Source: Macrostomum lignano (taxonomy: Eukaryota). Taken from it: DNA of 64,000 nt. A program made the translations under genes and the position numbers. Under the pieces are notes generated by a model. The model was not told the origin of the DNA. It worked only from the letters and a program-made list of their open reading frames with translations, and searched no databases. Of this stretch, positions 1-61,641 are shown piece by piece (within the stretch, counting starts at the first letter, position 1; each line of letters opens with the position of its first letter). The DNA lies in contig NIVC01001697.1 in assembly GCA_002269645.1 (NCBI GenBank), positions 124,001-188,000 of the forward strand, given 5' to 3'.

Positions 1-3000
1 GGCCACCTTCTCCGTCTGCTGCAGCGGCCAGCTTGGTCGGTAATCGCGCACTCGACGCATCACCTGCCGACCGTTTGCGTCGGTATAGAAAGTAGCCGAG
101 CTGCTCAGCTGTGAGTCGTAGCGCACAATGACCTCTCGCCCGGTGTTGGCGTCGTAGGGAATCGGGCCCACTGTGAGCTCGTTCTCGTTGTACTGCAGCG
201 AGTCGCCATTGTTGGAAAATTTGCGCAACACCTGGTAGGCCCAGTCGGACCAGAGCAGGTGAGTTTCGTTCACCACCGGGCCGAATACGCCAGCGATTTG
301 CTCGAGTGAGAACTGCTCCGGGGTCTGCCTTGTTGGCCTGAAAGTGGGTTCGATTTTTTTAAGGTGACAGGTGTGACTAGGGTAAGAAAAGCATACATAG
401 GTCATTGAAGATCTCACCGAAACACATAAGCGCCGGAGGCTCTGAACTCTGCTCTAGAATTGTTGCCCGGATATCCGTAATAATAAGCCATGCTGGGCAC
501 TCCGCAGCCAGCGTGCTGACTCAGCCAGTCCGCCTTCCTCTTCGATGCCGAGATCTTGCCCCTGCGGTAGCCCCCGAACAGCAGCCGGATCGGGGTGAAC
601 GTTGAGACGCCTGGAGAGCCGGGGGCCGCGGCAGCCACTCGGTAGACAGCGAATCCCATGGCTGGAATGGCTGACACGTTGAACACCAGCTCGCAGGTGG
701 ATTTCGCACCTGCCCGTTCAGGTACTCGCAGAGTACCATTATTCACCGGGATAGTCTGCGACATCACCGCCTGGCCATGCTCGTCGCTAACGACGTAGTA
801 GCGCCCGGTAACCGGTATTCTGGCCAGGTGCCACACCGGGTGACTCACCGGGTTATAAAAGTGCAGGTAGAAGTCGGTGTTGGAGTCGGTGAACGGGCAA
901 TAGGAGATATTAGCCAGGCCGCAGGTAGACATGCCTGAGTAGGCGGCGCTGTCTCCGGTGAGATTCGCCAAAGCAGATTGCAGCACCGGGTAGGCCCGGT
1001 CGATTCCGTTGGAGATTCGCAGCGCATAGTCGTAGGCAACTAGCTGCCTCTCCGTGCCTGTAAAACAGCGACCCCATCAATGTGTGCACATGTGATCCGA
1101 TGGATTGGTAATACAGAAGTACTGTATTATTTTATACTGAACAATCATACATATGTAGAGGGTGTTTTCTACAATATCACCAATTCGAATAAACCCTGTC
1201 CTGCCCTCAATACCACACCCTGCCGTCAACTCTACAACCTGCTCTCAACTCTACACCCTGCTCTCAACTCTACACCCTGCCGTCAACTCTACACCCTGCC
1301 GTCAACTCTACACCCTGCCGTCAACTCTACACCCTGCCGTCAACTCTACACCCTGCCGTCAACTCTACACCCTGCCGTCAACTCTACACCCTGCCGTCAA
1401 CTCTACACCCTGCCGTCAACTCTACACCCTGCCGTCAACTCTACACCCTGCCGTCAACTCTACACCCTGCCGTCAACTCTACACCCTGCCGTCAACTCTA
1501 CACCCTGCCGTCAACTCTACACCCTGCCGTCAACTCTACACCCTGCCGTCAACTCTACACCCTGCCGTCAACTCTACACCCTGCCGTCAACTCTACACCC
1601 TGCCGTCAACTCTACACCCTGCCGTCAACTCTACACCCTGCCGTCAACTCTACACCCTGCCGTCAACTCTACACCCTGCCGTCAACTCTACACCCTGCCG
1701 TCAACTCTAACCCTGCCGTCAACTCTACACCCTGCCGTCAACTCTACACCCTGCCGTCAACTCTACATCCTGCCGTCAACTCTACACCCTGCCGTCAACT
1801 CTACACCCTATCCTCAACTCTACACTCTGCTCCTAATTCCACCCTGCCCAGATTCTACACCCTGCCCCAGATTCTACACCCTGCCCTCAATTCTACACCC
1901 TGCCCCAGATTCTACACCCTGCGCCAGATTCTACACCCTGCCCCAGATTCTACACCCTGCCCCAGATTCTACACCCTGCGCCAGATTCTACACCCTGCCC
2001 CAGATTCTACACCCTGCCCCAGATTCTACACCCTGCTACCAATTCTATTCACTAAAACGCCTGCACCCTATCCAATACTCACCGGACACTCCATCGTGAT
2101 GCTGCACAACGCCCAACGCCTGGCGCAGCGGATCAATTCTCTCCTCAGCCTCCGCGCCATCCCGCTGCAGGCCAGCCAGGCAGGCTGTCTGCTTGACGGC
2201 CTGGAACTGGTTCGAAGCGGTTCGCACGTAGCGCTTGAGAGCGGCCCGGCTGGTGAAGAAGCCAGTCAAGAACGAGTGAGCATCGAATCCGTACGGATAG
2301 AAGTCGTCACTCTTTACCGTCCACAGCAGGTTCTGATCGTGCACTGATTTTGTATAGCAGCTTGGCGTACTGTAGTACACTGTGACATTGTGCGCTGCAG
2401 TACGGTTGTTCACCGCCTTGATCAGCTTGTCGAATATTTTGAAGTTCTTGCGGGCATTCTGGTATTGAAAATCGCAACCCATAGTCAGCATGAGATGATC
2501 GGAGCTGTACACCTGCCGGCGAGTGTTCACCATGTCGACGAACTGTTTGACCTTCTGCTCCACATTGAAGTCGTAGAGCTGCGGGTCGTCCTGCACGGGC
2601 TGGTCGCCCGTCTCGAAGCTGAAGCCTCCTGGCTGGCAGTAGCCATCGTACAGCTTGCCAGAAAACAGATCCGTCTGAGGACTGCCGATATCCTGGCTGG
2701 CCCGCCACACCTGTTGTTGTCGGACGACTGTCACTTAGGTGTGATTGACTCTCGGTGTGTCTCATTCCCACCGACTCTCAGTCTCTGACTGTCCGTGTCT
2801 GACTCACTGTCCGTGTCTGACTCTCACTGTCCGTGTCTGACTCTCACTGTCCGTGTCTGACTCTCACTGTCCGTGTCTGACTCTCACTGTCCGTGTCTGA
2901 CTCTCACTGTCCGTGTCTGACTCTCACTGTCCGTGTCTGACTCTCACTGTCCGTGTCTGACTCTCACTGTCCGTGTCTGACTCTCACTGTCCGTGTCTGA

Positions 3001-4595
3001 CTCTCACTGTCCGTGTCTGACTCTCACTGTCCGTGTCTGACTCTCACTGTCCGTGTCTGACTCTCACTGTCCGTGTCTGACTCTCACTGTCCGTGTCTGA
3101 CTCTCACTGTCCGTGTCTGACTCTCACTGTCCGTGTCTGACTCTCACTGTCCGTGTCTGACTCTCACTGTCCGTGTCTGACTCTCACTGTCCGTGTCTGA
3201 CTCTCGATCGTTCCCCCGACTATCCGAAGATCTTTGATCAGCCTACCATCTCCATGCGCCGCGTCTTCCGCCTAATCGCCTGATCCTGATAGTCGATGCG
3301 GCCAAAGTACAGCCCGTCGTAGCCCATCAGCGCCATCATTGCGGCGTGCTCTTTGCTGTGCCCGAACGGATCCACCTGCCAGGCAACCCGAGGCCTGCCG
3401 CAGTCGCCGAAAGTGTCGTTGAGAAACCGGAGTCCCTGCGTGTGCTGGTCGATGATGTCCACGTAGTGGGTTGCCGCCTCGTCGTCCATGGACCAGCCGC
3501 CCTGGGCAAACTGCAGCTGGCCGTTCTGCACCAGCTGTTTCACCTGTGTGTTGGCGGGAGCGATAAATAGCTAAAATGGTACTCATTTACCTTTCTGGTG
3601 AGTTCAAAACCACAACATTCTTATTCGAAAATGTCAGATCCCCTAAGCTTCACATTTCCCAAGCTTCATATTCTTAAACTTATTATCACCAAACTTAATA
3701 TCCTCTCAATCTTTACACCCCCCAATCTTCACATCTCTAATCTTCACATCCCACAATCTTCACATCCCTCAATCTTCACATCCCTCAATCTTCACATCCA
3801 CAACCTTCACATCTTCAATTTTCACATCCCACAATCTTACGTCCCTAATCTTCATATTCTCAAGCTTCACATCCCCATGCAATCCTCACATTCCCAATCT
3901 TCACATCCCCAATCTTCACATCCCCAAATTTCACATCCCCAAACTTCACATCCCCAATCTTCACACCCCCCAATCTTCACATCCCCAAGCTTCACATCCC
4001 TAATTTTCACATCCCACAATCTTCACATCTCCAATCTTCACATCTCCAAACTGCAGATCCCGGAACGTCACACCTCCAATTTTCGAATCCCCAATTTCGA
4101 GCAAAACAGGTACTTAAAGTACTTTAACCACCCCAAATTTCACATTCAAATTCCCTCAAAGTTGGCAAGAAACCAGCGTAAAAATGAAAGCCTGCGAAGT
4201 TTGAATGGAAAATTTGCCCCGGCTCTCAGTAAATCGATCAGGTATAAAATGACGCTCACCTTAGCCTGCTTATCGGCGCTCTGCTCTCGCCACCACCTGA
4301 AGAAGTAGGCTATCTCAACGTACGTAAACTTTCTATCCGGATTAATGAGCAGCTCTTCCACCACAGTGTCCAGAATGAACTGCACCTGATAGTAATAGTA
4401 CTGGTCAACTGTCATCAGCCAGCCAACATCGTCGTGCGTGTGCGGCACCAGGTGGACGTTGACCCTACCTGGCACGGGCTTCGGGCAGGCGTTGTAGCCA
4501 CAGGTAGAGGCCTCCGGTCGAGCAGATGAAGACCGACAACAGAGCAGCAGGAAGGCCGCCAGAGTTACTAACGGCACTAGACGAAAATCTTCCAT
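1..4595 (-). CDS. MAN2B1: Lysosomal alpha-mannosidase (GH38, MAN2B1-like); exons 4595-4260, 3543-3247, 2710-2083, 1057-418, 327-<1; 3' end outside window
   Basis: Signal peptide, then [38 protein letters not shown] and FYTDANGR motifs. All four introns are GT-AG, and the phases (0,0,1,2) join into one continuous frame. Confidence 0.95.
1200..2040. repeat. 19-bp minisatellite (CTCTACACCCTGCCGTCAA)n in mannosidase intron 3, changing to a CCCCAGATTCTACACCCTG variant
   Basis: Tandem copies read directly; lies within intron 1058-2082. Confidence 0.95.
2788..3205. repeat. 20-bp minisatellite (CTCTCACTGTCCGTGTCTGA)n, ~21 near-perfect copies, mannosidase intron 2
   Basis: Period 20 read directly. 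Confidence 0.97.
3700..4050. repeat. Degenerate ~15-bp repeat (CAATCTTCACATCCC)n in mannosidase intron 1
   Basis: Recurrent TCTTCACATC core with variable spacing. Confidence 0.85.
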
Positions 4596-17985: not shown

Positions 17986-20900
17986 TCACACTGATACCGT
18001 GCGTCCGTTGAACTCGTCCCACTCTTCTCGCTCCTCGGCGGTTGATGCTGATGAGCACACGCTCGACCGAGCTGCTGCTCCATCCGCAGGCGGAGCCTCA
18101 CTGATATGGTTGGCTTCCACCAGTTCTCCGTTGCGGTAAACCCGACAGCTGAACTTCGAGATCCTGGGCGAGTTCGTTGCAGCTGCATCTGCGCCAGCTT
18201 CGTCGGTGTCTGAACGCGAACGGACGCTGGACGCGCAGCTGTTTCCCCGTTCGACGTGGCAGGCAAAATTCGCCATCACGGGTGGCGTAGCGGCCCCGCC
18301 GCGCTGCTCCGAAGGATGCTTAGCATGCTTCCTGTTAGTTGGTGGCTGATTCGAGTCCCGAAGTAGATCTGGTCGAAGCTCGTCTGCGGACGATTCCGAC
18401 ACCTCGCTAGACGGAGATGAGTTTTCAGGACGATCCGAGTTCAGCGAGTTGTCGATTCGCTGCAGTTGCTTTGCTTTCAACGCCTGTTCGCGATGTTCTG
18501 CTGAATGAGGAGACATTGCAGTGTACTCGTGTTTGACGGGTTCAGTAGTGAGCTCTTCCTCATGGGACTGAGTCTGTCCACCAGTTTCTGGCGAGCTTTC
18601 ACTTTGCTTGTGAAACATCGCTCCCAATGCATCGGTTCGATTCTCGTGAGCTGGTTCAAGCTCCAATGAAAGCGCACTGAGCTCATCTTGGGTATCTGCA
18701 CTCCCAGAAGGCGGATTAAGTCCTTGCTCTACGCCACCGACATGATGTGCGACAGGTGCCAAGTCCTCATCTTTTGTCTCAGATGGAGGTCTCAGGTCCG
18801 ATGACAAGCCGCTTGCCTGGTGTGTGACAGGTGCCAAGTCCTCATCTCGCGTCTCAGATGGAGGTCTCAGGTCCGATGACAAGCCGCTTGCCTGGTGTGT
18901 AACAGGTGCCAAGTCCTCATCTCGCGTCTCAGATGGAGGTCTCAGGTCCGATGACATGCCGCTCGTCTGGTGTGTAACAGGTGCCAAGTCCTCATCTTTT
19001 GTCTCAGATGGAGGTCTCAGGTCCGATGACAAGCCGCTTGCCTGGTGTGTGACAGGTGCCAAGTCCTCATCTCGCGTCTCAGATGGAGGTCTCAGGTCCG
19101 ATGACATGCCGCTCGTCTGGTGTGTAACAGGTGCCAAGTCCTCATCTTTTGTCTCAGATGTAGGTCTCAGGTCCGATGACAAGCCGCTTGCCTGGTGTGT
19201 GACAGGTGCCAAGTCCTCATCTTTTGTCTCAGATGTAGGTCTTAGGTCCGATGACAAGCCGCTTGCCTGGTGTGTGACAGGTGCCAAGTCCTCATCTTTT
19301 GTCTCAGATGGAAGTCTCAGGTCCGATGACATGTCACTCGTCTGGTGTGTGACAGGTGCCAAGTCCTCATCTTTTGTCTCAGATGGAGGTCTCAGGTCCG
19401 ATGACAAGCCGCTTGCCTGGTGTGTGACAGGTGCCAAGTCCTCATCTCGCGTCTCAGATGGAAGTCTCAGGTCCGATGACATGCCGCTCGTCTGGTGTGT
19501 AACAGGTGCCAAGTCCTCATCTTTTGTCTCAGATGGAGGTCTCAGGTCCGATGACAAGCCGCTTGCCTGGTGTGTGACAGGTGCCAAGTCCTCATCTCGC
19601 GTCTCAGATGGAGGTCTCAGGTCCGATGACATGCCGCTTGCCTGGTGTGTGACAGGTGCCAAGTCCTCATCTCGCGTCTCAGATGGAGGTCTCAGGTCCG
19701 ATGACATGCCGCTCGTCTGGTGTGTGACAGGTGCCAAGTCCTCATCTTTTGTCTCAGATGTAGGTCTCAGGTCCGATGACAAGCCGCTTGCCTGGTGTGT
19801 GACAGGTGCCAAGTCCTCATCTCGCGTCTCAGATGGAGGTCTTAGGTCCGATGACATGCCGCTTGCCTGGTGTGTGACAGGTGCCAAGTCCTCATCTCGC
19901 GTCTCAGATGGAGGTCTCAGGTCCGATGACATGCCGCTCGTCTGGTGTGTGACAGGTGCCAAGTCCTCATCTTTTGTCTCAGATGTAGGTCTCAGGTCCG
20001 ATGACAAGCCGCTCGTCTGGTGTGTGACAGGTGCCAAGTCCTCATCTCGCGTCTCAGATGGACTTCTCAGGTCCGATGACATGCCGCTCGTCTGGTGTGT
20101 GACAGGTGCCAAGTCCTCATCTTTTGTCTCAGATGGAAGTCTCAGGTCCGATGACATGTCACTCGTCTGGTGTGTGACAGGTGCCAAGTCCTCATCTTTT
20201 GTCTCAGATGGAGGTCTCAGGTCCGATGACAAGCCGCTTGCCTGGTGTGTGACAGGTGCCAAGTCCTCATCTCGCGTCTCAGATGGAGGTCTCAGGTCCG
20301 ATGACAAGCCGCTTGCCTGGTGTGTGACAGGTGCCAAGTCCTCATCTCGCGTCTCAGATGGAGGTCTCAGGTCCGATGACATGCCGCTCGTCTGGTGTGT
20401 AACAGGTGCCAAGTCCTCATCTTTTGTCTCAGATGGAGGTCTCAGGTCCGATGACAAGCCGCTTGCCTGGTGTGTGACAGGTGCCAAGTCCTCATCTCGC
20501 GTCTCAGATGGAGGTCTCAGGTCCGATGACATGCCGCTCGTCTGGTGTGTAACAGGTGCCAAGTCCTCATCTTTTGTCTCAGATGTAGGTCTCAGGTCCG
20601 ATGACAAGCCGCTTGCCTGGTGTGTGACAGGTGCCAAGTCCTCATCTTTTGTCTCAGATGTAGGTCTTAGGTCCGATGACAAGCCGCTTGCCTGGTGTGT
20701 GACAGGTGCCAAGTCCTCATCTTTTGTCTCAGATGGAAGTCTCAGGTCCGATGACATGTCACTCGTCTGGTGTGTGACAGGTGCCAAGTTCTCATCTTTT
20801 GTCTCAGATGGAGGTCTCAGGTCCGATGACAAGCCGCTTGCCTGGTGTGTGACAGGTGCCAAGTCCTCATCTCGCGTCTCAGATGGAGGTCTTAGGTCCG

Positions 20901-23900
20901 ATGACATGCCGCTCGTCTGGTGTGTAACAGGTGCCAAGTCCTCATCTTTTGTCTCAGATGGAAGTCTCAGGTTCGATGACATGTCACTCGTCTGGTGTGT
21001 GACAGGTGCCAAGTCCTCATCTTTTGTCTCAGATGTAGGTCTCAGGTCCGATGACAAGCCGCTTGCCTGGTGTGTGACAGGTGCCAAGTCCTCATCTCGC
21101 GTCTCAGATGGAGGTCTCAGGTCCGATGACATGCCGCTCGTCTGGTGTGTAACAGGTGCCAAGTCCTCATCTTTTGTCTCAGATGGAAGTCTCAGGTCCG
21201 ATGACAAGCCGCTTGCCTGGTGTGTGACAGGTGCCAAGTCCTCATCTTTTGTCTCAGATGTAGGTCTCAGGTCCGATGACATGTCACTCGTCTGGTGTGT
21301 GACAGGTGCCAAGTCCTCATCTTTTGTCTCAGATGGAAGTCTCAGGTCCGATGACATGTCACTCGTCTGGTGTGTGACAGGTGCCAAGTCCTCATCTTTT
21401 GTCTCAGATGGAGGTCTCAGGTCCGATGACAAGCCGCTTGCCTGGTGTGTGACAGGTGCCAAGTCCTCATCTCGCGTCTCAGATGGAGGTCTCAGGTCCG
21501 ATGACAAGCCGCTTGCCTGGTGTGTGACAGGTGCCAAGTCCTCATCTCGCGTCTCAGATGGAGGTCTCAGGTCCGATGACATGCCGCTCGTCTGGTGTGT
21601 AACAGGTGCCAAGTCCTCATCTTTTGTCTCAGATGTAGGTCTCAGGTCCGATGACAAGCCGCTTGCCTGGTGTGTGACAGGTGCCAAGTCCTCATCTTTT
21701 GTCTCAGATGATGTAGGTCTCAGGTCCGATGACATGCCGCTCGTCTGGTGTGTAACAGGTGCCAAGTCCTCATCTTTTGTCTCAGATGTAGGTCTCAGGT
21801 CCGATGACATGCCGCTCGTCTGGTGTGTGACATGTGCCAAGTCCTCATCTCGGATCTCAGGTGGTGGACCCAGCTCTGATGATATGCCACTCGTCTGCTG
21901 TGCTACAGGTTCTAGCATATCTTCGGTTACTTCATTTGGTTCCTCATTCTTGTCTTTTTCTATAATTTGCTGATAGCCCATAGCAGCTAGCGATTCGGTA
22001 TGGGTCCGTTCAGCGGTTGGTGGGTCCAGTTCCACTGACAACGCGATGTCCTGGTGCTCAGCTTCTTCCAGCTCATTCTTACTGGTCTTAAATGGTGGTT
22101 CAAGCCTCCACTGCGGTTTCTTGGCCGGAATCAACTTCTCGGTTTCTGCTTTAGCATGAGGTTCAAACTCCGATGATAGATGCTCTCTAGGTGTCACTTC
22201 GTCATCGCGGATGTCAGGTGGTGGTTCAAGCTCCAGTGACAGCGCACTGCTCTGATGTGCCACAGGTGTCGGTTTATCTTCGTTGTCTTTTATTTTGCTC
22301 TGCTGATCTGCCCTGCTAAGCACTTCCAACGGCTTTTCATTGAATCCCGCAGCTGGGGCGTTCAGTTCCACTGACAGTAAGCTGTCTTGTACATGTAGCT
22401 CAGCCTCACTTTTCTCAGCAGGTGGCTCAAGCTCAGATATCGGCGCGCCTTTCTTATCAGGTGCCGAATCTTTATCAGGGATTTCAGCAGGCCCTTCAAG
22501 ATTCAATGACATGCCACTTGGCTGATATGCGGCAGGTGCAAACTGGTCTTCATTGGCTTCAGCTGGTTCCTCATCCATGTAGCTAAGCGCTGCCAAGGAC
22601 TCTTTATGGTCCTCTTCAGGTGGGGCGTTCAGTTCCACTGACAGCACGCTGTCCTGGTGCTCGGTTGTGTCCGCATCCTTTTCGTGCGGCTCAGTTTGAG
22701 AGTGAAGTTCACCTGGCACTTCTCTGTGCTGAAGCTTGACAGCTTTCAACTCCTGCTGACGATACTCGCTAACCAGGGCAGGGCTTTCCTGCCCTGACAC
22801 TGCCTCCGCTGGCAGCTGATTGCTTTGTACCTCGTCGATCTCACCTGTCTGTTGTTCTTGTCTTCTGACAGCTTTCAAGAGAGCTTCATCAACTAGAGTA
22901 TCTGCTAGTAGACAAATAGCCCGCAAGTCTTCTTTGGGTATATCCGTTGAGTGCTTGAGGCCTCCTGGTGCTCTGACGGTGGCGTTGCCTGCGCCAAGAG
23001 GCACTCATCTTCAGAATCGGGGCGCTTGTGGTCGCGTCGTTTTGCCAGCACATCGTCGAGAATCTCAGACGAAGCTCCGTTGCCATCGCTATTGAAGTCT
23101 GGCAGCTCGATTGACAAGCTCGCGAACTGAGCGCCTTCTCGATTGCCGTCGGTCTCTGGGCGATCAGCAGCCAAGCTGTCACTGTAGTACCTGGGATGCA
23201 CCGCAGTGGACAAATAGGACTCTACGGCCATCAGCTGGTGCTCTTGATCGCCTAGAGTCCATCGTTCTTCTTCGATATCACTGCTTGTATTTTCCTTTGT
23301 TGCACCGGACAGATCGACGGACTCTGGCGTGGCGGCTCGCTCGGCGCGGCACACGAACGGTGAGATCGTCGGAGCGGTGCGGCGGCTTCTGCGCAGCGGC
23401 GGCAGCAACTGCGGAGCCGGCTGTCGACTGTCTGGAGACTGCTGAAGCTTGCTGACGTTGTCCTTTTTGGAATCTTGAAGCTCAGGTTCTCGAGGCGATG
23501 CAAGCTGTTCGATGGACAGCGAGCTGTCATTGGCTTTGGGGGTTTCATTGAGCTCAGCCAGTTTGACTGGCTGCAGCAGCTGCTGATGCTGCTGGCTAGG
23601 GTCGCCAGGCTCGTCAGTCAGGGGCGGCGGTGACAGCAGGTCGCTGCTCAGTGACGCATCGCACCGCTCCGCATGGCTCAGAATCAGCGACTCGTCCAAA
23701 GACTGCACTTGGGGATGAAATTCATCGCCTGATTGACCAGCGAGCGTTGAGTAATTCTCAGCAGGTGGCTTCACGCCCGAAGGTTCCGCCCGAGTCAGGG
23801 TCGCTTTGCACAGCTGATCCGCACCGCTGTTACAGTCTCCCGTCGGAGGGGCGGCCATCGGCACCAGAGTGTCTGCCGCCACGGCTGGCTGCGAGTCGCC

Positions 23901-24139
23901 GACGTCGTCACCATCGACACCTTCGATGTTGACTTTCACTTTCAACAGCAGCTGCTGGTTGGCAGCGGCCAGGAAGTCTTTGTCGTTGAGCCCCACTGAC
24001 ATCTGGAGCGTCAGCTGCGACTCGGCTGAGCAATCTGCGGCCTGAGTCTGGAGAGGGTGCTCAACTCGAGGCAGGGACAGTCGGCACCGCCAGAGGCTCT
24101 GTTCGCCCCAGGCATCCGGCTGGCTGCTGAATGGCTCGC
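17986..24139 (-). CDS. Giant (~6.1 kb) exon encoding a ~2,000-aa acidic, Ser/Pro-rich disordered region with ~41 x 25-aa repeats; one -1 frame break near 22905-23004
   Basis: ORFs 22905-24002 and 17986-23004 overlap and have similar composition. The frame stays open upstream to a TTTCCAG acceptor at 24140-24141. The repeat array keeps frame, and its only visible indel is 3 nt. Confidence 0.75.
18765..21850 (-). repeat. Coding 75-bp tandem repeat (DEDLAPVTHQ[TA]SG[ML]SSDLR[PL][PT]SET[KR])n
   Basis: Period 75 read directly. Confidence 0.97.
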
Positions 24140-24751
24140 CTGGAAATTGCAGTTTCAGTTTTTACCGATATCTGACTGCTTTGAACACGTTCGCTTGATG
24201 TTTCTAGCACATTCGAAGCTTTTGCACGATTCAAGCTCACAAGAGCCAATACCCAGGGCGCAGAGAGTGTACACTGTCTGACGACGAGAAAATCTGGGCT
24301 GCTGTACACCCTGTGTGAGTGTGTGCGTGCTCAGAGGTCAGCGTAATGCCACGCGCCCTCGGATACCTCAGCGGCCCTCCCAAGCATGATTTACAGCACA
24401 AGACCAGGGTCAAATCCCTGTGGCCGCCCAGAATCAAAACCTTGGTACTTAACCGATAAATCAATATTCGCAGGAGAGCTCCTCTGGCGCAACGTCTTTG
24501 TTGACGTCGTCTGACAACTCACCAATCGTCGTCTGACGGAAATTCTGCCCATTTCTCTGTACGCGGGCACGCACTCGTGCACACGCTCCTACTGTGTGTA
24601 CAACAGCCCTGACTTTCTAACCGTTATAACCGTCAGGCATGTACACTCTCTGAGCCTTGCGGTTGGCCCTCGAGGGTTTGAATCGCACGACAATTCCCTC
24701 CCAGCCTCGATCGCTAGTCACAAAAGTGGCGAGCAAAGAGCTGACACTTAC

Positions 24752-27402
24752 TGAACAACTTATAGTACAGACTGGCGTCTTCGTCTCTGCATTCGATCTC
24801 TCTGAAGTCGGCCGCTCCGCTCAGCAGAAGTCTAGTGAAGTTCTTGAAAGTGTGGCGATGCAGGAACCTGGCTAATTGGCTCTCATTGACGCTGGCGTCG
24901 CTTCGGATACAGATCTGCATGCGAGAGTGGAGCGAATGCTGTGTTTGAGTCCTTTCTCTGACGGGGTCATGACAGGGGTTGTTAGACAAGCGAGGGCTTA
25001 ATCACCTGTTAGACCCCTTAGTTATGTTTTACAAGACACAAGTGGGTTATCATCTTTTGGAAATAAGTGCGGTTCGTCACCTATCACCCTGTAGATAAGG
25101 GTGAGATTAGTGTCCTGCTAGACATGGATTGTTAACCTGTTAAAAAGGTTTTAGTCACCCGTTAGACCAGGGTTAATCGCTTATTAAACTATTGTAGTAC
25201 CCAGTACATTGGTGTTGTAGATAAAAAACTGTTAGACAAGGATGTTACTAGTTACACAGCGACGCTTGACCCTTTTTCTGGGGGGGGGGCGTATCCCAGC
25301 GGTCTAGCCCGGCGCTCTGATGTGCCAGCGGCCCAGGCTCGATTCCAAGTGCAGTCGCATTAATTTAGGGCTAAATTGGAATCTCAGCTTGGCTCTGCTC
25401 GTGCAATTAACGCCCTTTGAGGGCCAACCCGCATGCCACAGTGAAGTGTACATGCCTAACGATACCTAAAGTCAGGGCTGTTGTACACTCCTGAGTGTGT
25501 GCCTGTGCGTATGACTGCGTACGTGTCCGCGCGCTTGTGTGCCTGCTCAGGGGAGTCGGCGGAATGGGCAGTAATGCCTCTCGCCGGTTGTGTGACAATG
25601 TCGCTTAAAGTGCACCAGGGTGCACACAGCTCCCTGCCTCTAATAAATAATAAAGAAGTACATTTCCTGATCGCACCAGGAAGATCTAATATCGGCTCAC
25701 TTCGTAGCAGGTTTCTCCGATGCCGAACCGCAGCGAGAAGCCGCACTGCGACACCTCCTGCACCTGCTGAAGCGAGTGGCCAACACTCTCAACTCCGTGC
25801 GCGCGCCGACCGATTCCCACCCAGCTGCCCCGCTCCATCGCCAGCAGACGGCCGCCGGGGCCTCGATGGGCGGCTTCGAAAACTGCGGCTGGGTTGGTGA
25901 CGTCATCAAGCGCGTCAGTCAGCTCTACTCAAAGGCTTCCGGTATCCTGTGTGGACAGCAGAGTTGCTGACACGCTGGAATGGGGCAAAGTTCTATCTTT
26001 GCAACGAATCTGTAATAAGGTTTACCTTAGATACGGGACCTAATCCCTGCACCATAGCAACGAATGGTTTACCTTAGATACGGGACCTAATCCCTGCACC
26101 ATAGCAACGAATGGTTTGCCTTAGATACGGGACCTAATCCCTGCACCATAGCAACGAATGGTTTACCTTAGATACGGGACCTAATCCCTGCACCATAGCA
26201 ACGAATGGTTTACCTTAGATACGGGAACTAATTGTTGTGTATTGCAAAGGCATGCAATGCGTAGGGATAGTTCGGGGACAGGGTTTCTAGAAACTTCCAC
26301 AGCAGGACTTCTTTACGCATAGTTCCAGAAGTTTCTTCTCCCGGTCTTTCTAGAACTTTCCTTCCCCGCTTGCATAATATACGAGCCGCCCTCCTATTGG
26401 CCAAGCCTCTTTTGGTGCCACTGGGCGCCCGGATAATTATCTATCTTGTTTCTGCGTTCGTTAATTCAACAACAGAACACTAATCCCTGCACCATAGCAA
26501 CGGGTGGTTTACTTTAGATACGGGAACTAATCCCTACACCATAGCAACGGATGGTTTACCTTAGATACGGGAACTAATCCCTACACCATAGCAACGGATG
26601 GTTTACCTTAGATACGGGAACTAATCCCTACACCATAGCAACGGATGGTTTACCTTAGATACGGGAACTAATCCCTACACCATAGCAACGGATGGTTCAC
26701 ATAGTACTACAAGTACATATAAGCGTATTACAAAACAAAAAAGCTTTATTTTATGTACTTTAAACCTCAGGGATCTTACCGAGAACCCAGCAGACTGCCG
26801 TGCACAATAACATCGCTGCCGGGTCTCAGTGGTCTCGGCAAAGCGATCAGCAGTTTTGTTTCCTGTTGTAAAATAATTTTTTGTAGTGGAAAGAGATTCA
26901 GGAATTTCCAGGTGCATGCACTAATTGTTGCCTAATTGGTCTTATAAGGCGGTAGATTCAGTGACCAAAATCTCCAACCTAAACCCGATATACCGCGTAG
27001 GTAGAAGGAATCAGTGAACGTTGCTACATTGATATGCGTTTTGCGTCGGGGACAAAGGATTTAAAAATGAATCATCGTAAAAATTTACAAATGTACATTT
27101 ACATGTAGCTATAATAGCCATAGAAAACTTGGGTCTAAAAAGAGAGCAGTTTCTGCCGACTTTCTTTGGCGCCATGCAGGGGCTTTAGCACCAAGGGGCT
27201 TTAGCACCAAGGGGTTTTAGCACCAAGGGGCTTTAGCACCAAGGGGCTTTAGCACCAAGGGGCTTTAGCACCAAGGGGCTTTAGCACTAAGGGCGCCAAG
27301 GGCCTGACGAGACAATAGAAAGCCAGTCTTGTAGTGGTTAAAACTCGATCAACTCACCGCTCCACCAGCAGCTCTGCGAGCTGACTGCTCCAACTCGAGC
27401 AT
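24752..27402 (-). CDS. Divergent galectin-like domain gene; exons 27402-27358, 26862-26780, 25946-25701 (one base short near 25927), 24914-24752; 3' continuation uncertain
   Basis: Spliced product: ALPRPLRPGSDVIVHGSL..PEAFEVEL..GSWV..FSLRFGIGETCYE..SVNESQLARFLHRHTFKNFTRLLLSG. This follows the galectin pattern (LxPGxxIxIxG; FxIxL; W; FxLxI; VxVNG..FxHR..IxxLxIxG). Splice phases are compatible (0,2,0,1). The first exon is the weakest part. Confidence 0.62.
26020..26695. repeat. 47-bp minisatellite (GTTTACCTTAGATACGGGA[C/A]CTAATCCCT[G/A]CACCATAGCAACG[A/G]ATG)n interrupted by a solo LTR
   Basis: ATAGCAA recurs at 26054 and 26101 (period 47). Confidence 0.95.
26233..26479. mobile_element. Solo LTR (247 bp), TGTT...AACA ends, 5-bp TSD CTAAT (BEL/Pao- or Gypsy-like)
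   Basis: CTAAT at 26228-26232 and 26480-26484 flank a unique insert. Removing it restores one intact 47-bp unit. Confidence 0.8.
27179..27292. repeat. 16-bp minisatellite (GGGGCTTTAGCACCAA)n, ~7 copies
   Basis: Read directly. Confidence 0.93.
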
Positions 27403-32944: not shown

Positions 32945-35553
32945 ATGACACTTCACGAAGTTGCCCTAACCTTGGCAGTGCTGATTTCATTCGCTGACGG
33001 TATCTCTTTTGTCTTCGACAAGAGGCCGGACCTGTGCCACAATGCTGCCACTGCAGCTGAGAGTCCGCGCAAACTGCTTGGCGTTGCCGATCCTCGAGTG
33101 TGCGCTGTCGAATGCGCGAGCAACACGACTCTGTGCTCAGTGTATGAGTACTCGCCTAGCAACAGGTCATGCATTCTTGGAAACAGCTGCGACCTGCTGC
33201 ATTTCTGGCAACTCAGCGGCGGACCGGCCTGCAACACGCAGGTGCTGCGAGGCGCAGCAGACTGTGAGACTGCGTCAGTGACTCCGACTAAGACTTCAAT
33301 TCTGACGACCCCAACTTCGACTACCTCGGTTCCGACTGCGGCTACGACCATTACGACTCCGACCACTACGATAACAACTACGACTCCGACTATGACAACC
33401 ACAACGACTCCGGCTACGACAACCACGACTCCGACTACCACAACCACCGCTACTCCGACAACCACCACGACTCCGACTACCACAACCACCACTACTCCAA
33501 CTACCACAACCACTACTACTCCGACAACCACCACGACTCCGACAACCACCACGACTCCGACTACCACAACCACCACGACTCCGACAACCACCACGACTCC
33601 GACAACCACCACGACTCCGACTACCACAACGACTCCAACTACCACAACGACTCCGACAACCACAACGACTCCGACAACCACCACGACTCCGACTACCACA
33701 ACGACTCCAACAACCACAACGACTCCGACTACCACCACGACTCCGACTACCACGACTCCGACAACCACAACGACTCCGACTACCACAACCACCACTACTC
33801 CGACTACCACAACCACCACGACTCCGACTACCACAACCACCACGACTCCGACAACCACAACGACTCCGACAACCACCACGACTCCGACTACCACAACCAC
33901 CACGACTCCGACAACCACCACGACTCCGACTACCACCACGACTCCGACTACCACGACTCCGACAACCACAACGACTCCGACTACCACAACCACCACTACT
34001 CCGACAACCACTACGACTCCGACAACCACTACGACTCCGACAACCACCACGACTCCGACTACAACCACCACACCGACTACGACCACTACGACTTCGACTA
34101 CGACAACCACTACGACCCCGACTACGACCACTACGACAACCACTACAACTCCTGCTCCAATGGTAGTAACAGGTAGGCATAAAATGAATTTTAACATTCG
34201 GAAGTATTAAGAAACAAAAGTTTTTTAAACCGAGCATTCAGCTGGAAATACTCGCAGAAAAAGCTTAAGGTTGGTCTCGCAGTCATACGGCTTAAGCTTT
34301 TCCATAAGGAAATGTTTTTAAACCACTGGTTCTGAGCGCGTCCATAGAGAATCATTCAATCACCCGCAACAAAATTGCTCTCTTAGTTAAAGCTAAATAA
34401 AAAAGAGATATCCAGAGCTGGACAAAGGACAGGCAGCTTAACTTGTGGCTCCTCTTGGATGTGACATCCGCCAGCAGGGGAGACAGCGGCGCCCGCAGAG
34501 CTCATGAAGCCATTTGCATATTTCAAAGACTCAAACATCGTACTTTCAATCTTCAGTTTTTCAGGATTTTTTAGCAAGAAATTTCCTACATATTGAAATT
34601 GAAATTTCGAATTTCAAATGAATCAATTAGGGTCTGTTGTGTCCGAGGCGCACACAAAAGTTTATCAAGCTACATTGTTTCTGAAAATGCTGCACAGGAG
34701 ACTACAGTACATGCATTTTTTAGTGCAGCGTCCATCTAATTTTGTTGTCCAATGAATTTATATTTAGTGCATAACTTCGAATCGTCAATTTCAATTTTCA
34801 GTGCCAACCTCGGGTTCAAAACAACATGGAACACCGGTGGACTACACGCCCCCTGTGGACAATGCCTGCTATCGGTTCGAAGCGCGTGGCGCCAAAGGAG
34901 GTTCCGGCGGAAGCGCAGCCGGTGGCAACGGGGCTATAAAAATTGCCCACTTTGTCTTGACCAGCTCTCAGACGTTGACTATTGTTGTCGGAAAACCCGG
35001 AAACAATGGCAATGGCGGCGGCGGAGGAGGCGGCACTTTTGTCTACACGAGTGGCGGCAGTCCCGTCCTGCTGCTGGCGGCCGGAGGAGGAGGCGGTGGA
35101 GCAGACGTCAACTCGGCTACAGGCAGCCCTGGAATCAGTTCGACCGGCGGCTGCTCCGGATTGGCCAATCAAAACGCGGGAAGCAACCCGTCCGGAGACA
35201 ACTGTGGCGCCGGCGGTGCCGGATGGCAATCACCTGGAACTTCACCAGGGGGCAACCATTGTGGCTCAGTTGGAAGCAATTTGGCAGGAGGTGATGGCGG
35301 ATCAGGAGGCGGCTTTGGTGGCTACGGTGGGGGAGGCGGTGGAGGCCGAACAAATGGAAATAATAAAGCTGGAGGCGGCGGCGGCGGTGGCTACTGCGGC
35401 GGCTCCGGTGGGGCAGAAGACAATCCGGGTGGCGGCGGCTCCAGCTATGCAGCTTCTTCAGCCAAGCAAGTTTCAGGATCGGATGGAGGCAACACCGAAT
35501 CTGATGGGAAGCTAGACATATCTATCGTGGCTAGCTCCGTCTGTACACCGTGA
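32945..35553 (+). CDS. Secreted signal peptide-PAN/apple-like-Thr mucin stalk-ALK/LTK-type glycine-rich domain protein, copy 1 (exons 32945-34172, 34802-35553; ~659 aa)
   Basis: Hydrophobic N-terminus; CAVECASNTTLCSVYEY...C PAN pattern; PTTTT tract; ACAG|GTAGGC donor and TTTTCAG acceptor in phase 1; GAKGG..FVL....L.IVVG..G..GGGGGGTFV...LLLAAGGGGG resembles the ALK/LTK GRD. Confidence 0.85.
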
Positions 35554-40293: not shown

Positions 40294-42901
40294 ATGACAC
40301 TTCACGAAGTTGCCCTAACCTTGGCAGTGCTGATTTCATTCGCTGACGGTATCTCTTTTGTCTTCGACAAGAGGCCGGACCTGTGCCACAATGCTGCAAC
40401 TGCAGCTGGCGGTCCGCGCAAACTGCTCGGCGTTGTCGATTCTCGAGTGTGCGCTGTCGAATGCGCGAGCAACACGACTCTGTGCTCAGTGTATGAGTAC
40501 TCGCCTAGCAACAGGTCATGCATTATTGGAAACAGCTGCGACCTGCTGCATTTCTGGCAACTCAGCGGCGGACCGGCCTGCAACACGCAGGTGCTGCGAG
40601 GCGCAGCAGACTGTGAGACTGCGTCAGTGACTCCGACTAAGACTTCAATTCTGACGACCCCAACTTCGACTACCTCGGTTCCGACTGCGGCTACGACCAT
40701 TACGACTCCGACCACTACGATAACAACTACGACTCCGACTATGACAACCACAACGACTCCGGCTACGACAACCACGACTCCGACTACCACAACCACCGCT
40801 ACTCCGACAACCACCACGACTCCGACTACCACAACCACCACTACTCCAACTACCACAACCACTACTACTCCGACAACCACCACGACTCCGACAACCACCA
40901 CGACTCCGACTACCACAACCACCACGACTCCGACAACCACCACGACTCCGACAACCACCACGACTCCGACTACCACAACGACTCCAACTACCACAACGAC
41001 TCCGACAACCACAACGACTCCGACAACCACCACGACTCCGACTACCACAACGACTCCAACAACCACAACGACTCCGACTACCACCACGACTCCGACTACC
41101 ACGACTCCGACAACCACAACGACTCCGACTACCACAACCACCACTACTCCGACTACCACAACCACCACGACTCCGACTACCACAACCACCACGACTCCGA
41201 CAACCACAACGACTCCGACAACCACCACGACTCCGACTACCACAACCACCACGACTCCGACAACCACCACGACTCCGACTACCACCACGACTCCGACTAC
41301 CACGACTCCGACAACCACAACGACTCCGACTACCACAACCACCACTACTCCGACAACCACTACGACTCCGACAACCACTACGACTCCGACAACCACCACG
41401 ACTCCGACTACAACCACCACACCGACTACGACCACTACGACTTCGACTACGACAACCACTACGACCCCGACTACGACCACTACGACAACCACTACAACTC
41501 CTGCTCCAATGGTAGTAACAGGTAGGCATAAAATGAATTTTAACATTCGGAAGTATTAAGAAACAAAAGTTTTTTAAACCGAGCATTCAGCTGGAAATAC
41601 TCGCAGAAAAAGCTTAAGGTTGGTCTCGCAGTCATACGGCTTAAGCTTTTCCATAAGGAAATGTTTTTAAACCACTGGTTCTGAGCGCGTCCATAGAGAA
41701 TCATTCAATCACCCGCAACAAAATTGCTCTCTTAGTTAAAGCTAAATAAAAAAGAGATATCCAGAGCTGGACAAAGGACAGGCAGCTTAACTTGTGGCTC
41801 CTCTTGGATGTGACATCCGCCAGCAGGGGAGACAGCGGCGCCCGCAGAGCTCATGAAGCCATTTGCATATTTCAAAGACTCAAACATCGTACTTTCAATC
41901 TTCAGTTTTTCAGGATTTTTTAGCAAGAAATTTCCTACATATTGAAATTGAAATTTCGAATTTCAAATGAATCAATTAGGGTCTGTTGTGTCCGAGGCGC
42001 ACACAAAAGTTTATCAAGCTACATTGTTTCTGAAAATGCTGCACAGGAGACTACAGTACATGCATTTTTTAGTGCAGCGTCCATCTAATTTTGTTGTCCA
42101 ATGAATTTATATTTAGTGCATAACTTCGAATCGTCAATTTCAATTTTCAGTGCCAACCTCGGGTTCAAAACAACATGGAACACCGGTGACTACACGCCCC
42201 CTGTGGACAATGCCTGCTATCGGTTCGAAGCGCGTGGCGCCAAAGGAGGTTCCGGCGGAAGCGCAGCCGGTGGCAACGGGGCTATAAAAATTGCCCACTT
42301 TGTCTTGACCAGCTCTCAGACGTTGACTATTGTTGTCGGAAAACCCGGAAACAATGGCAATGGCGGCGGCGGAGGAGGCGGCACTTTTGTCTACACGAGT
42401 GGCGGCAGTCCCGTCCTGCTGCTGGCGGCCGGAGGAGGAGGCGGTGGAGCAGACGTCAACTCGGCTACAGGCAGCCCTGGAATCAGTTCGACCGGCGGCT
42501 GCTCCGGATTGGCCAATCAAAACGCGGGAAGCAACCCGTCCGGAGACAACTGTGGCGCCGGCGGTGCCGGATGGCAATCACCTGGAACTTCACCAGGGGG
42601 CAACCATTGTGGCTCAGTTGGAAGCAATTTGGCAGGAGGTGATGGCGGATCAGGAGGCGGCTTTGGTGGCTACGGTGGGGGAGGCGGTGGAGGCCGAACA
42701 AATGGAAATAATAAAGCTGGAGGCGGCGGCGGCGGTGGCTACTGCGGCGGCTCCGGTGGGGCAGAAGACAATCCGGGTGGCGGCGGCTCCAGCTATGCAG
42801 CTTCTTCAGCCAAGCAAGTTTCAGGATCGGATGGAGGCAACACCGAATCTGATGGGAAGCTAGACATATCTATCGTGGCTAGCTCCGTCTGTACACCGTG
42901 A
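40294..42901 (+). CDS. PAN-mucin-GRD gene copy 2 (exons 40294-41521, 42151-42901); 1-bp deletion near 42187 frameshifts exon 2 (pseudogene, truncated form or assembly error)
   Basis: Near-identical to copy 1. CCGGTGAC here versus CCGGTGGAC (copy 1) and CCGGTGAAC (copy 3). The spliced frame stops at TAA 42285-42287. Confidence 0.8.
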
Positions 42902-48419: not shown

Positions 48420-50796
48420 ATGACACTTCACGAAGTTGCCATAACCTTGGCAGTGCTGATTTCATTCGCCGACGGTACATCTTTTGTCTTCGACAAGAGG
48501 CCGGACCTGTGCCACAATGCTGCCACTGCAGCTGAGAGTCCGCGCAAACTGCTTGGCGTTGCCGATCCTCGAGTGTGCGCTGTCGAATGCGCGAGCAACA
48601 CGACTCTGTGCTCAGTGTATGAGTACTCGCCTAGCAACAGGTCATGCATTCTTGGAAACAGCTGCGACCTGCTGCTTTTCTGGCAACACAGCGGCGGACC
48701 GGCCTGCAACACGCAGGTGCTGCGAGGCGCAGCAGACTGTGAGACTGCGTCAGTGACTCCGACTACGAGTTCAATTCTGACGACCTCGACTCCGACTGCG
48801 ACTCCGACCACTACAACTCCGACTACGACCACCACCACGACCCCGACGGCGACCACTACGACTCCGACTCCGACCACCACCACGACTCCGACTACTACAA
48901 CCACCACGACTCCAACTACGACCACCACGACTCCGACTACGACCACCACCACGACTCCGACTACGACCACTACGACTCCTACTACGACCACTACAACTCC
49001 GACTACGACCACTACGACTCCGACTACGACCACTACGACTCCGACTACGACCACTACAACTCCGACTACGACCACCACCACGACTCCGACTACGACCACC
49101 ATGACTCCGACTACGACCACTACAACTCCGACTACGACCACCACCACGACTCCGACTACGACCACCACGACTCCGACTACGACCACTACGACTCCGACTA
49201 CAACCACCACGACTCCGACTACTACAACCACCACGACTCCGACTACAACCACGACTCCGACTACGACCACCACCACGACTCCGACTACTACAACCACCAC
49301 GACTCCAACTACGACCACCACGACTCCGACTACTACAACCACCACAACTCCGACTACTACAACCACCACGACTCCAACTACGACCACCACGACTCCGACT
49401 ACGACCACCACGACTCCGACTACGACCACTACGACAACCACTACAACTCCTGCTCCAATGGTAGTAACAGGTAGGCATAAAAAGAATTTTAGCATACGGA
49501 AGTATTAAGAAGCAAAAGTTTATATTTAAACCGAGCCTTCAGCTGGAAATACTCGCAGAAAAAGCTTAAGGATGGTCTCGCAGTCATACGGCTTAAACTT
49601 TTCCATGATGAAATGTTTTTAAACCACTGGTTCTGAGCTCGTCCATAGAGACTCCCTCAATCACCCCCAACAAAAATTGCTATCTTACTTAAAGCTAAAT
49701 AAAAAAGAGGTACGAGCTATCCGAAACTGGACGAAAGACAGGCAGCTCAACTTGTGGCTCCTCTTGGATGACATCCCCGCCAGCAGGGGAGACAGGGGCG
49801 CCCGCAGAGCTCAATGTTCAGTTTTTCAGGATTTTTTGCTAGAAATTTCCTACATACTGAAATTGAAATTTCGAATTTCAAATGAATCAAGGGTCTGTTT
49901 ATCAAGTTTATAAAGTTTATCAAGCTGCATTTTCTCTGAAAATGCTACAGAGAAAAGACTAAGTACATGTATTTTTAGTGCAGCGTCCATCTAATTTTGT
50001 TGTCCAATGAATTTATATTTATTGCATAACTTCGAATCGTCAATTTAAATTTTCAGTGCCAACCTCGGGTTCAAAACAACATGGAACACCGGTGAACTAC
50101 ACGCCCCCTGTGGACAATGCCTGCTATCGGTTCGAAGCGCGTGGTGCCAAAGGAGGTTCCGGAAGTGCAGCCGGTGGCAACGGGGCTATAAAAATTGCCC
50201 ACTTTATCCTAAACAGCTCTCAGACGTTGACTATTGTTGTCGGAAAACCCGGAAACGATGGCAATGGCGGCGGCGGAGGAGGCGGCACTTTCGTCTACAC
50301 GAGTGGCGGCAGTCCCGTCCTGCTGCTGGCGGCCGGAGGAGGAGGAGGCGGAGGAGACGTCAGCTCGGCTACAGGCAGCCCTGGAAACAGTTCGACCGGC
50401 GGCTGCTCCGGAAACGCGGGAAGCAACCCGTCCGGAAATAACTGCGGCGCCGGCGGTGCAGGATGGCAATCACCTGGAACTCCACCCGGGGGCAGCCAGT
50501 GTGGCACCGTTGGAAGTAACTTGGCAGGAGGTGATGGCGGATCAGGAGGCGGCTTTGGTGGCTACGGTGGTGGAGGCGGTGGAGGCCGAACAACTGGTGG
50601 ACCAAATAAGGCCGGAGGCGGCGGCGGCGGTGGCTACTGCGGCGGCTCCGGCGGCCCATCGGGCAGTCCAGGTGGCGGCGGCTCCAGCTATGCAGCTGCT
50701 TCAGCTAAGCAAGTTTCAGGAACGGATGGAGGCAACACCGAATCTGATGGGAAGGTAGACATATCTATTGTGGCTGGCTCTTTCTGCACACCATGA
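48420..50796 (+). CDS. PAN-mucin-GRD gene copy 3 (exons 48420-49470, 50057-50796; ~596 aa), intact and more diverged
   Basis: Same splice sites and phase as copy 1, a shorter and different Thr tract, and only in-frame indels in the GRD. Confidence 0.85.

Positions 50797-53412: not shown

Positions 53413-61641
<8,229 letters not shown>

Follow-up and report, generated by a model that had tools for sequence, protein, structure and literature searches.

Galectin-3 combines one galectin domain with a long, repetitive, disordered non-lectin region and lacks a signal peptide, while LGALSL/GRP, GRIFIN and galectin-10 keep the galectin scaffold, have lost the canonical β-galactoside contacts and pass the Pfam galectin family PF00337. 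Here we describe a gene of Macrostomum lignano in a stretch of 64,000 nucleotides (contig NIVC01001697.1 of assembly GCA_002269645.1, positions 124,001 to 188,000 of the forward strand; hereafter the window) whose N-terminal head would resemble the latter proteins if its fold is correctly read, but which, unlike them, does not pass PF00337. This single gene runs over seven exons from 27402 to 17061 (Table 1; coordinates are those of the whole stretch and all features of the gene lie on the minus strand) and joins the head to a very long acidic repeat tail. The best overall explanation of the data, to which we assign a probability of roughly 0.7, is a seven-exon gene that is broken in the window copy and whose head is possibly galectin-derived. 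The architecture is already present in GenBank as a hypothetical protein, and the gene is lineage-restricted.

The exon map was obtained by aligning A0A1I8JEH8, PAA92282.1 and further annotated proteins to the window, in which all 12 splice sites are canonical GT/AG. A preliminary description, made from the letters of the sequence, had proposed four small phase-compatible exons on this strand as the source of the head; we recovered them residue for residue in A0A1I8JEH8 and PAA92282.1, and in an intact copy they encode 188 residues. Exon 1 is identical to the start of both proteins and shows no mismatch over its 45 nt to contig NIVC01000058.1, which carries PAA92282.1. An exon 3 starting downstream of the TGA that it contains was rejected as phase-incompatible with the exon 2 donor (GTAAGA), and A0A1I8JEH8 places the acceptor at 25974. 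At the other end, exons 6 and 7 represent the C-terminus of annotated M. lignano proteins (including A0A1I8JEB8), mapped to the window with its splice sites. The TGA closing the long open reading frame (ORF; 17988-17986) sits just beyond the GTGAGT donor of exon 5, and the annotated proteins run 113 residues further through these last two exons, giving a conceptual coding sequence of 2,352 codons. The giant tail of the preliminary description thus stands in its length (about 2,050 codons), acidity and repeats but not as one ORF, being interrupted in the window by a 1-nt deletion, and the gene continues past 17986.

A search of 5.8 billion proteins with the spliced head gave a single match, UniRef A0A1I8JEH8 (M. 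lignano), and the non-repeat parts of the giant ORF matched one cluster, headed by PAA92282.1 ('hypothetical protein BOX15_Mlig018971g3, partial [Macrostomum lignano]'). No relatives outside Macrostomum were found among 1.8-5.8 billion proteins, nor any relatives of the tail outside M. lignano. phmmer, run exhaustively against 1.84 billion representatives, returned, besides the query, only an 82-amino-acid mixed-frame fragment, so that no alignment could be built for the head. Across these databases the gene appears restricted to Macrostomum, where it is annotated as BOX15_Mlig018971g3/g2 and BOX15_Mlig024880g1.

The seven exons map one to one onto these annotated genes and the neighbourhood is conserved. 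PAA92282.1 and PAA92281.1 (BOX15_Mlig018971g3 and g2, respectively) and PAA47377.1 (BOX15_Mlig024880g1) have the same exons and the same head-tail junction as the window, with 98.5-99% nucleotide identity to it outside the repeat array. Contig NIVC01000058.1 (assembly Mlig_3_7) is colinear with the window and shares its neighbours, with a CYRI gene on the downstream side and a LINE (long interspersed nuclear element) on the upstream side; outside the array the two differ at 39 of 3,851 exon positions (1.0%) and 45 of 3,042 intron positions (1.5%). Three changes are specific to the window (TGA as codon 58, a deletion of 1 nt in exon 5 and an insertion of 3 nt in exon 3), and the window holds 42 repeat units against about 20 in the GenBank copy. 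On this comparison we take the window to hold a separate, slightly diverged copy of the annotated gene. Transcript breaks within the repeat array have left the GenBank models split or partial, the gene on NIVC01000058.1 being annotated as two partial models (g3 and g2). Over 14 kb, contig NIVC01004473.1 (PAA47377.1) shows 13 indels but not a single substitution relative to NIVC01000058.1, a pattern that points to one locus assembled twice, with indel errors. NIVC01004473.1 is annotated with a 'complete' protein of 1,659 amino acids, the artefactual N-terminus of which results from assembly indels. According to the genome paper (PMC5730564), non-repetitive blocks duplicated at ≥95% identity account for 180 Mb of this M. 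lignano assembly. No expression or functional data for Mlig018971 or Mlig024880 were found in the literature or in expression look-ups.

The window copy carries two lesions. Codon 58, in exon 3, is TGA (25931-25929) and is CGA (Arg) in NIVC01000058.1, the difference being a C-to-T transition at a CpG; A0A1I8JEH8, PAA92282.1 and A0A1I8GVY8 all have arginine at this position. Because of this stop the head forms no ORF in the window copy, whose translation, read from the ATG, ends after 57 residues. The giant exon lacks a T at 22942/22941 (NIVC01000058.1 CGGATTATACCC, window CGGATATACCC) and the shifted frame runs into a stop at 22907-22905, which is why two overlapping ORFs in different frames (22905-24002 and 17986-23004) are seen here; the homologous exon in NIVC01000058.1 is an unbroken ORF of 1,499 codons. 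An exact-product look-up of the window's frameshifted ORF, as an independent check of the deletion, returned no record. Judged from these lesions, the window copy is probably non-functional, a null allele or a duplicate in decay being the most likely reading.

Constraint on the gene was estimated from the 11 synonymous and 28 non-synonymous differences between the window and NIVC01000058.1. The ratio of non-synonymous to synonymous differences per site (pN/pS) was 0.8 overall, so that the coding sequence of the two copies diverges almost neutrally (head, 0.66; stretch before the repeats, 0.97; stretch after the repeats, 0.62); an omega of 0.3 or less was rejected (P = 0.003) and an omega of 1 was not. 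Among the units of the array the per-site ratio (0.74-0.92) was near neutral. The chance of finding 730 non-repeat codons without a stop is 4e-13. These values indicate that the gene codes for protein, or did so until recently, under weak constraint, although one dead copy would also inflate pN/pS.

Whether the head exons and the giant exon belong together, and whether the window copy is truly broken, can each be read in another way. The end of exon 4 (24752) and the acceptor at 24139 are both in phase 1, as the preliminary description had it, and the direct splice between them that it considered is the one present in the near-identical copy: PAA92282.1 reads ...REIECRDEDASLYYKLFS/EPFSSQPDAWG... 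(with ...ASLYYKLFS before the junction) at this point, matching the window's direct junction, ...YYKLFS/EPFSSQ.... As the Mlig_3_7 GenBank annotation rests on transcript evidence (RNA-seq with StringTie/TACO, together with de novo transcripts placed on the genome; PMC5730564), the junction is transcript-supported in the sister copy. The alternative route through a mini-exon at 24591-24523 did not hold up: the exon is missing from the PAA92282.1 model and matched no Pfam family, and its interpretation as a second galectin domain was rejected on the same grounds. Were the head and the giant exon separate genes, with the annotated fusion produced by read-through or by transcript assembly, one could point to A0A1I8JEH8 and A0A1I8GVY8 (224 and 225 amino acids, respectively), which end at a TAG at 24619-24617, to the giant exon's own ATG at 24002 and to retention of intron 4, which would yield a head-only protein of about 200 amino acids. 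These two older MAKER models, in which the head gene ends in intron 4, demand an implausible 22-nt intron and are regarded as artefacts, whereas the RNA-derived model uses a consensus donor and acceptor (GTAAGT and tttccag) with matching phases, and, read back from its first ATG, the giant-exon ORF meets no stop in the 46 codons up to the acceptor. We consider separate genes very improbable, and the sequence comparison supports the fusion, i.e. head and giant exons as parts of one gene. A further possibility is that the window copy is intact and functional, the TGA and the deletion having arisen in sequencing or assembly or representing a heterozygous variant. The public assembly is rich in indel errors, as the redundant contigs of one locus illustrate, so the deletion could be one of them, and the TGA is read from the assembled sequence; besides, every splice site is preserved and exons 6 and 7 are identical to those of NIVC01000058.1. 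Yet the TGA is a substitution, a class of error of which the redundant contigs show none in 14 kb, and as a CpG transition it belongs to the most frequent class of real mutation; it is less likely than the deletion to be an assembly error. The genuine divergence of 1-1.5% from NIVC01000058.1 marks a separate copy, free to decay, and the pN/pS of about 0.8 points the same way. An intact window copy is therefore unlikely in our estimation, and a broken one is retained in what follows.

The names under which UniRef lists pieces of the gene call for a separate remark, A0A1I8JEH8 and A0A1I8GVY8 appearing as 'Rad60-SLD domain-containing protein' and A0A1I8JEB8 as 'Pecanex-like protein'. The Rad60-SLD name was not reproduced for A0A1I8JEH8 with current Pfam, in which neither this protein nor the intron 4 ORF had a match to PF11976 or the ubiquitin family at E ≤ 10. 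A SUMO-like (Rad60-SLD) domain in intron 4 (24700-24464), suggested by that name and by inspection of the sequence, was rejected, as the ORF has no Pfam match and scored like its shuffles against a purpose-built SUMO hidden Markov model (HMM; 0.4 bits, with 355 of 5,000 shuffles scoring as high or higher).

The galectin-like character of the head, the central claim of the preliminary description, comes down to a sub-threshold match. PF00337 is the top Pfam family for A0A1I8JEH8 (residues 21-172, profile positions 4-129 of 132, 16.4 bits, E = 0.0065), so that the match spans the full profile, and exon 4 is the stretch that fits it best (profile 84-130). The window's own spliced head scored 16.3 bits. 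Both scores are below the PF00337 gathering cut-off of 22.1 bits, and by score the head is not a member of the family. Comparison by hhalign with nine human galectins (sequences entered by hand) returned the Pfam register, in which LRPGSDVIVHG lies opposite L.pG..v.I.G, W94 opposite the conserved Trp and VNESQLARFLHR opposite VNG....F.HR; exon 2 was aligned with the N-terminal L.pG..v.I.G strand of galectins both by hhalign and by an HMM of the nine galectins. This HMM scored the head at 4.6 bits, a value reached by one of 5,000 composition-matched shuffles. Seven residues make up the sugar-contact set (His, Asn and Arg, then Asn, then Trp, Glu and Arg). In the low-confidence hhalign register the His is replaced by E76, the first Asn by A78, the second Asn by a gap and the Glu by I97, while W94 and possibly R80 and R99 are retained. 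At least four of seven contacts are lost, in keeping with the earlier remark that the canonical sugar-binding residues are mostly missing and only the Trp is evident. The N-terminus of the head (MLELEQSARRAAGGAETK...) has no hydrophobic core, the highest 9-residue Kyte-Doolittle mean being 1.53; by hydropathy (no dedicated signal-peptide predictor was run) the head, like galectins, has no signal peptide.

The galectin link falls short of all conventional thresholds, and much of the evidence can be accommodated by a head unrelated to galectins, that is, a lineage-specific β-rich or partly disordered domain that resembles PF00337 by chance. In addition to the sub-threshold score, the E-value of 0.0065 per protein would produce hundreds of such matches per proteome, and the probability returned by hhalign was low (2.4%, E = 0.019). 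Sequence and profile searches of the PDB gave no galectin at E ≤ 10, and BLASTP of the head against the nine galectins gave E ≥ 0.12. Two AlphaFold2 runs without homologues had predicted local distance difference test (pLDDT) values of 34.5 and 41.5, too low for use; for what such low-confidence models are worth, the head was mainly β-strand, with helices placed where galectins have strands, and Foldseek of the better one against the PDB gave no match at E ≤ 0.001 and no galectin, the matches that it did list being meaningless. The profile and structure comparison that the preliminary description had proposed as a check neither established the galectin fold nor overturned it. The missing sugar-binding motifs also fit an unrelated domain. 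A chance resemblance is harder to reconcile with galectins being the best Pfam family in a colinear, full-length match, with the same register emerging independently from hhalign and the nine-galectin HMM, and with the shuffle test, in which one of 5,000 shuffles reached the real score as opposed to 355 of 5,000 in the SUMO-fold control on the neighbouring ORF; the missing signal peptide also fits galectins. We rate an unrelated head at somewhat short of even odds and a true galectin-derived fold at about an even chance. The fuller scenario, in which a highly diverged galectin fold without sugar binding was joined in the Macrostomum lineage to a polyanionic tail of 1,500-2,100 residues, forming a reversed chimera galectin whose repeat number and sequence evolve fast and whose duplicates decay after a recent genome duplication, is offered tentatively, as a possibility that we hold to be rather less than even.

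The tail, which is of low complexity and built around 25-residue repeats of Ser, Thr, Pro, Asp and Glu, has an isoelectric point (pI) of 4.5 and consists of 19% Asp + Glu, 30% Ser + Thr + Pro and 1.5% aromatic residues. Its tandem array contains 42 copies according to Tandem Repeats Finder, or 41 units of 25 amino acids by unit analysis, and about 20 in NIVC01000058.1, a two-fold difference in repeat number between copies. Upstream of the array the giant exon also contains older, degenerate units. A Pfam scan of all non-repeat parts of the tail matched no family, and the same was true of the C-terminal stretch homologous to A0A1I8JEB8. The Cys motif F-x-C-[RH]-[AV]-[EY]-R occurs at three sites of the tail, all on the minus strand (23357-23337, ISPFVCRAERA; 18267-18247, MANFACHVERG; and 18153-18133, ISKFSCRVYRNG), and may be a short linear binding motif. 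Antisense to the array lies an ORF of 1,049 amino acids (18824-21973, plus strand) that is no evidence of a gene; it arises from the 75-bp unit, whose length is divisible by three and which contains no stop on either strand.

Roles for head and tail can be proposed from composition only, which again tells against too firm a reading. In intact copies the protein, having no signal peptide, would be made in the cytosol. Its head may derive from a galectin carbohydrate-recognition domain (CRD) minus at least four of the seven sugar contacts; if so, canonical β-galactoside binding would be impossible and the head might act as a protein-docking or dimerizing module rather than as a lectin. The tail would serve as a long, flexible, multivalent acidic spacer or scaffold, probably phosphorylatable and variable in repeat number, while the window copy would be decaying amid large, recently duplicated genome blocks. 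Should the head have a galectin fold, the known galectin architectures would be extended by an N-terminal non-lectin CRD on a very long acidic disordered tail, an arrangement not known for the family, and a lectin scaffold would have been put to another use in a lineage-restricted, fast-evolving gene. The window copy would illustrate how genes lose function after the recent duplication of the M. lignano genome, and knock-down or knock-out designs must hit all copies. In practical terms, the analysis yields a corrected seven-exon model, joins the split GenBank models and flags the lesions.

Table 1. Coordinates of the gene and of other features mapped in the window.
Feature	Position	Strand	Remarks
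Exon 1	27402-27358	-	ATG at 27402; encodes MLELEQSARRAAGGA; donor GTGAGT
Exon 2	26862-26780	-	encodes ETKLLIALPRPLRPGSDVIVHGSLLGS; ends in phase 2; donor GTAAGA; tblastn of PAA92282.1 at 100% identity
Exon 3	25974-25701	-	central part of head; acceptor ttccag/C; donor GTGAGC; sole conserved Trp; in-frame TGA; tblastn-supported
Exon 4	24914-24752	-	C-terminal part of head (ICIRSDASVNESQLARFLHRHTF...YYKLF); ends in phase 1; donor GTAAGT
Intron 4	24751-24140	-	holds the proposed mini-exon 24591-24523 and the read-through ORF of MAKER models A0A1I8JEH8/A0A1I8GVY8
Exon 5 (giant exon)	24139-17990	-	6,150 nt, ~2,050 codons; acceptor tttccag/GC, phase 1; donor TCAGT/GTGAGT
Tandem array (in exon 5)	21910-18746	-	75-bp units, 25 amino acids; consensus DEDLAPVTHQ[A/T]SGMSSDLRPPSET[K/R]
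Exon 6	17534-17270	-	VTRISQPMPEC...SDRGCD; 0/265 mismatches to NIVC01000058.1
Exon 7	17138-17061	-	VVVKQTYPTVSAGIRACSGADHPSV; stop TAA 17063-17061
LINE-type reverse transcriptase ORF	32056-30617	-	RVT_1, E = 2.8e-30; upstream of gene; common to NIVC01000058.1
CYRI/FAM49 (Rac1-binding) gene	11732-about 16700	+	PF07159; convergent with gene; kept in NIVC01000058.1 and NIVC01004473.1
Tandem unit, three copies	32945-35553, 40294-42901, 48420-50796	+	two-part coding; copies 1 and 2 nearly identical
GH38 lysosomal-type alpha-mannosidase exons	414-4595	-	Glyco_hydro_38N and Alpha-mann_mid matches; left end
Mitochondrial ATP synthase subunit b exons	53413-56172	-	Mt_ATP-synt_B, E = 1.7e-17; near right end

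The two copies also differ around the coding exons. A minisatellite of 16 bp (AGGGGCTTTAGCACCA) in intron 1 (27178-27293, 7.2 copies) is shorter by 64 bp, or four units, in NIVC01000058.1, so its length varies between copies. Intron 2 contains two arrays of one 47-bp unit in the same orientation (26019-26232 and 26479-26697, with 4.6 and 4.7 copies, respectively), which flank a unique stretch of 246 bp; in NIVC01000058.1 this intron is shorter by 139 bp, and the region has the appearance of a small insertion or mobile element that carries repeats. Past the stop codon (17060-16700) the identity to NIVC01000058.1 falls from the 100% of exons 6 and 7 to 87% (46 mismatches in 347 positions), which could be due to a repeat or to a local rearrangement of the 3' untranslated region. 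The window as a whole holds introns, a LINE reverse transcriptase and many tandem arrays. In the tandem unit present in three copies (Table 1), part 1 encodes a protein that looks secreted, in which a Cys-rich N-terminal domain (PAN_1, 19.6 bits, below threshold) is combined with a long mucin-like array of Thr/Pro, and part 2 is a Gly-rich ORF (YTPPVDNACYRFEARGAKGGSGG...).

Of the proteins with which the gene can be compared, LGALSL/GRP, GRIFIN and galectin-10 are small and single-domain, unlike the product of this gene, and BLASTP of the head against LGALSL showed no specific similarity (E = 4.1). The likeness to galectin-3 lies in a single galectin-like domain, here a putative one, attached to a long, repetitive, disordered region without a signal peptide. 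Chimera-type galectins are defined by an N-terminal Pro/Gly/Tyr-rich tail and a C-terminal CRD; here the order is reversed, the head being N-terminal, and the sugar-binding residues are mostly missing. The two also differ in the tail itself, which in galectin-3 is Pro/Gly/Tyr-rich and about 110 residues long, whereas that of the M. lignano gene is acidic, rich in Ser and Thr and about 2,000 residues long.

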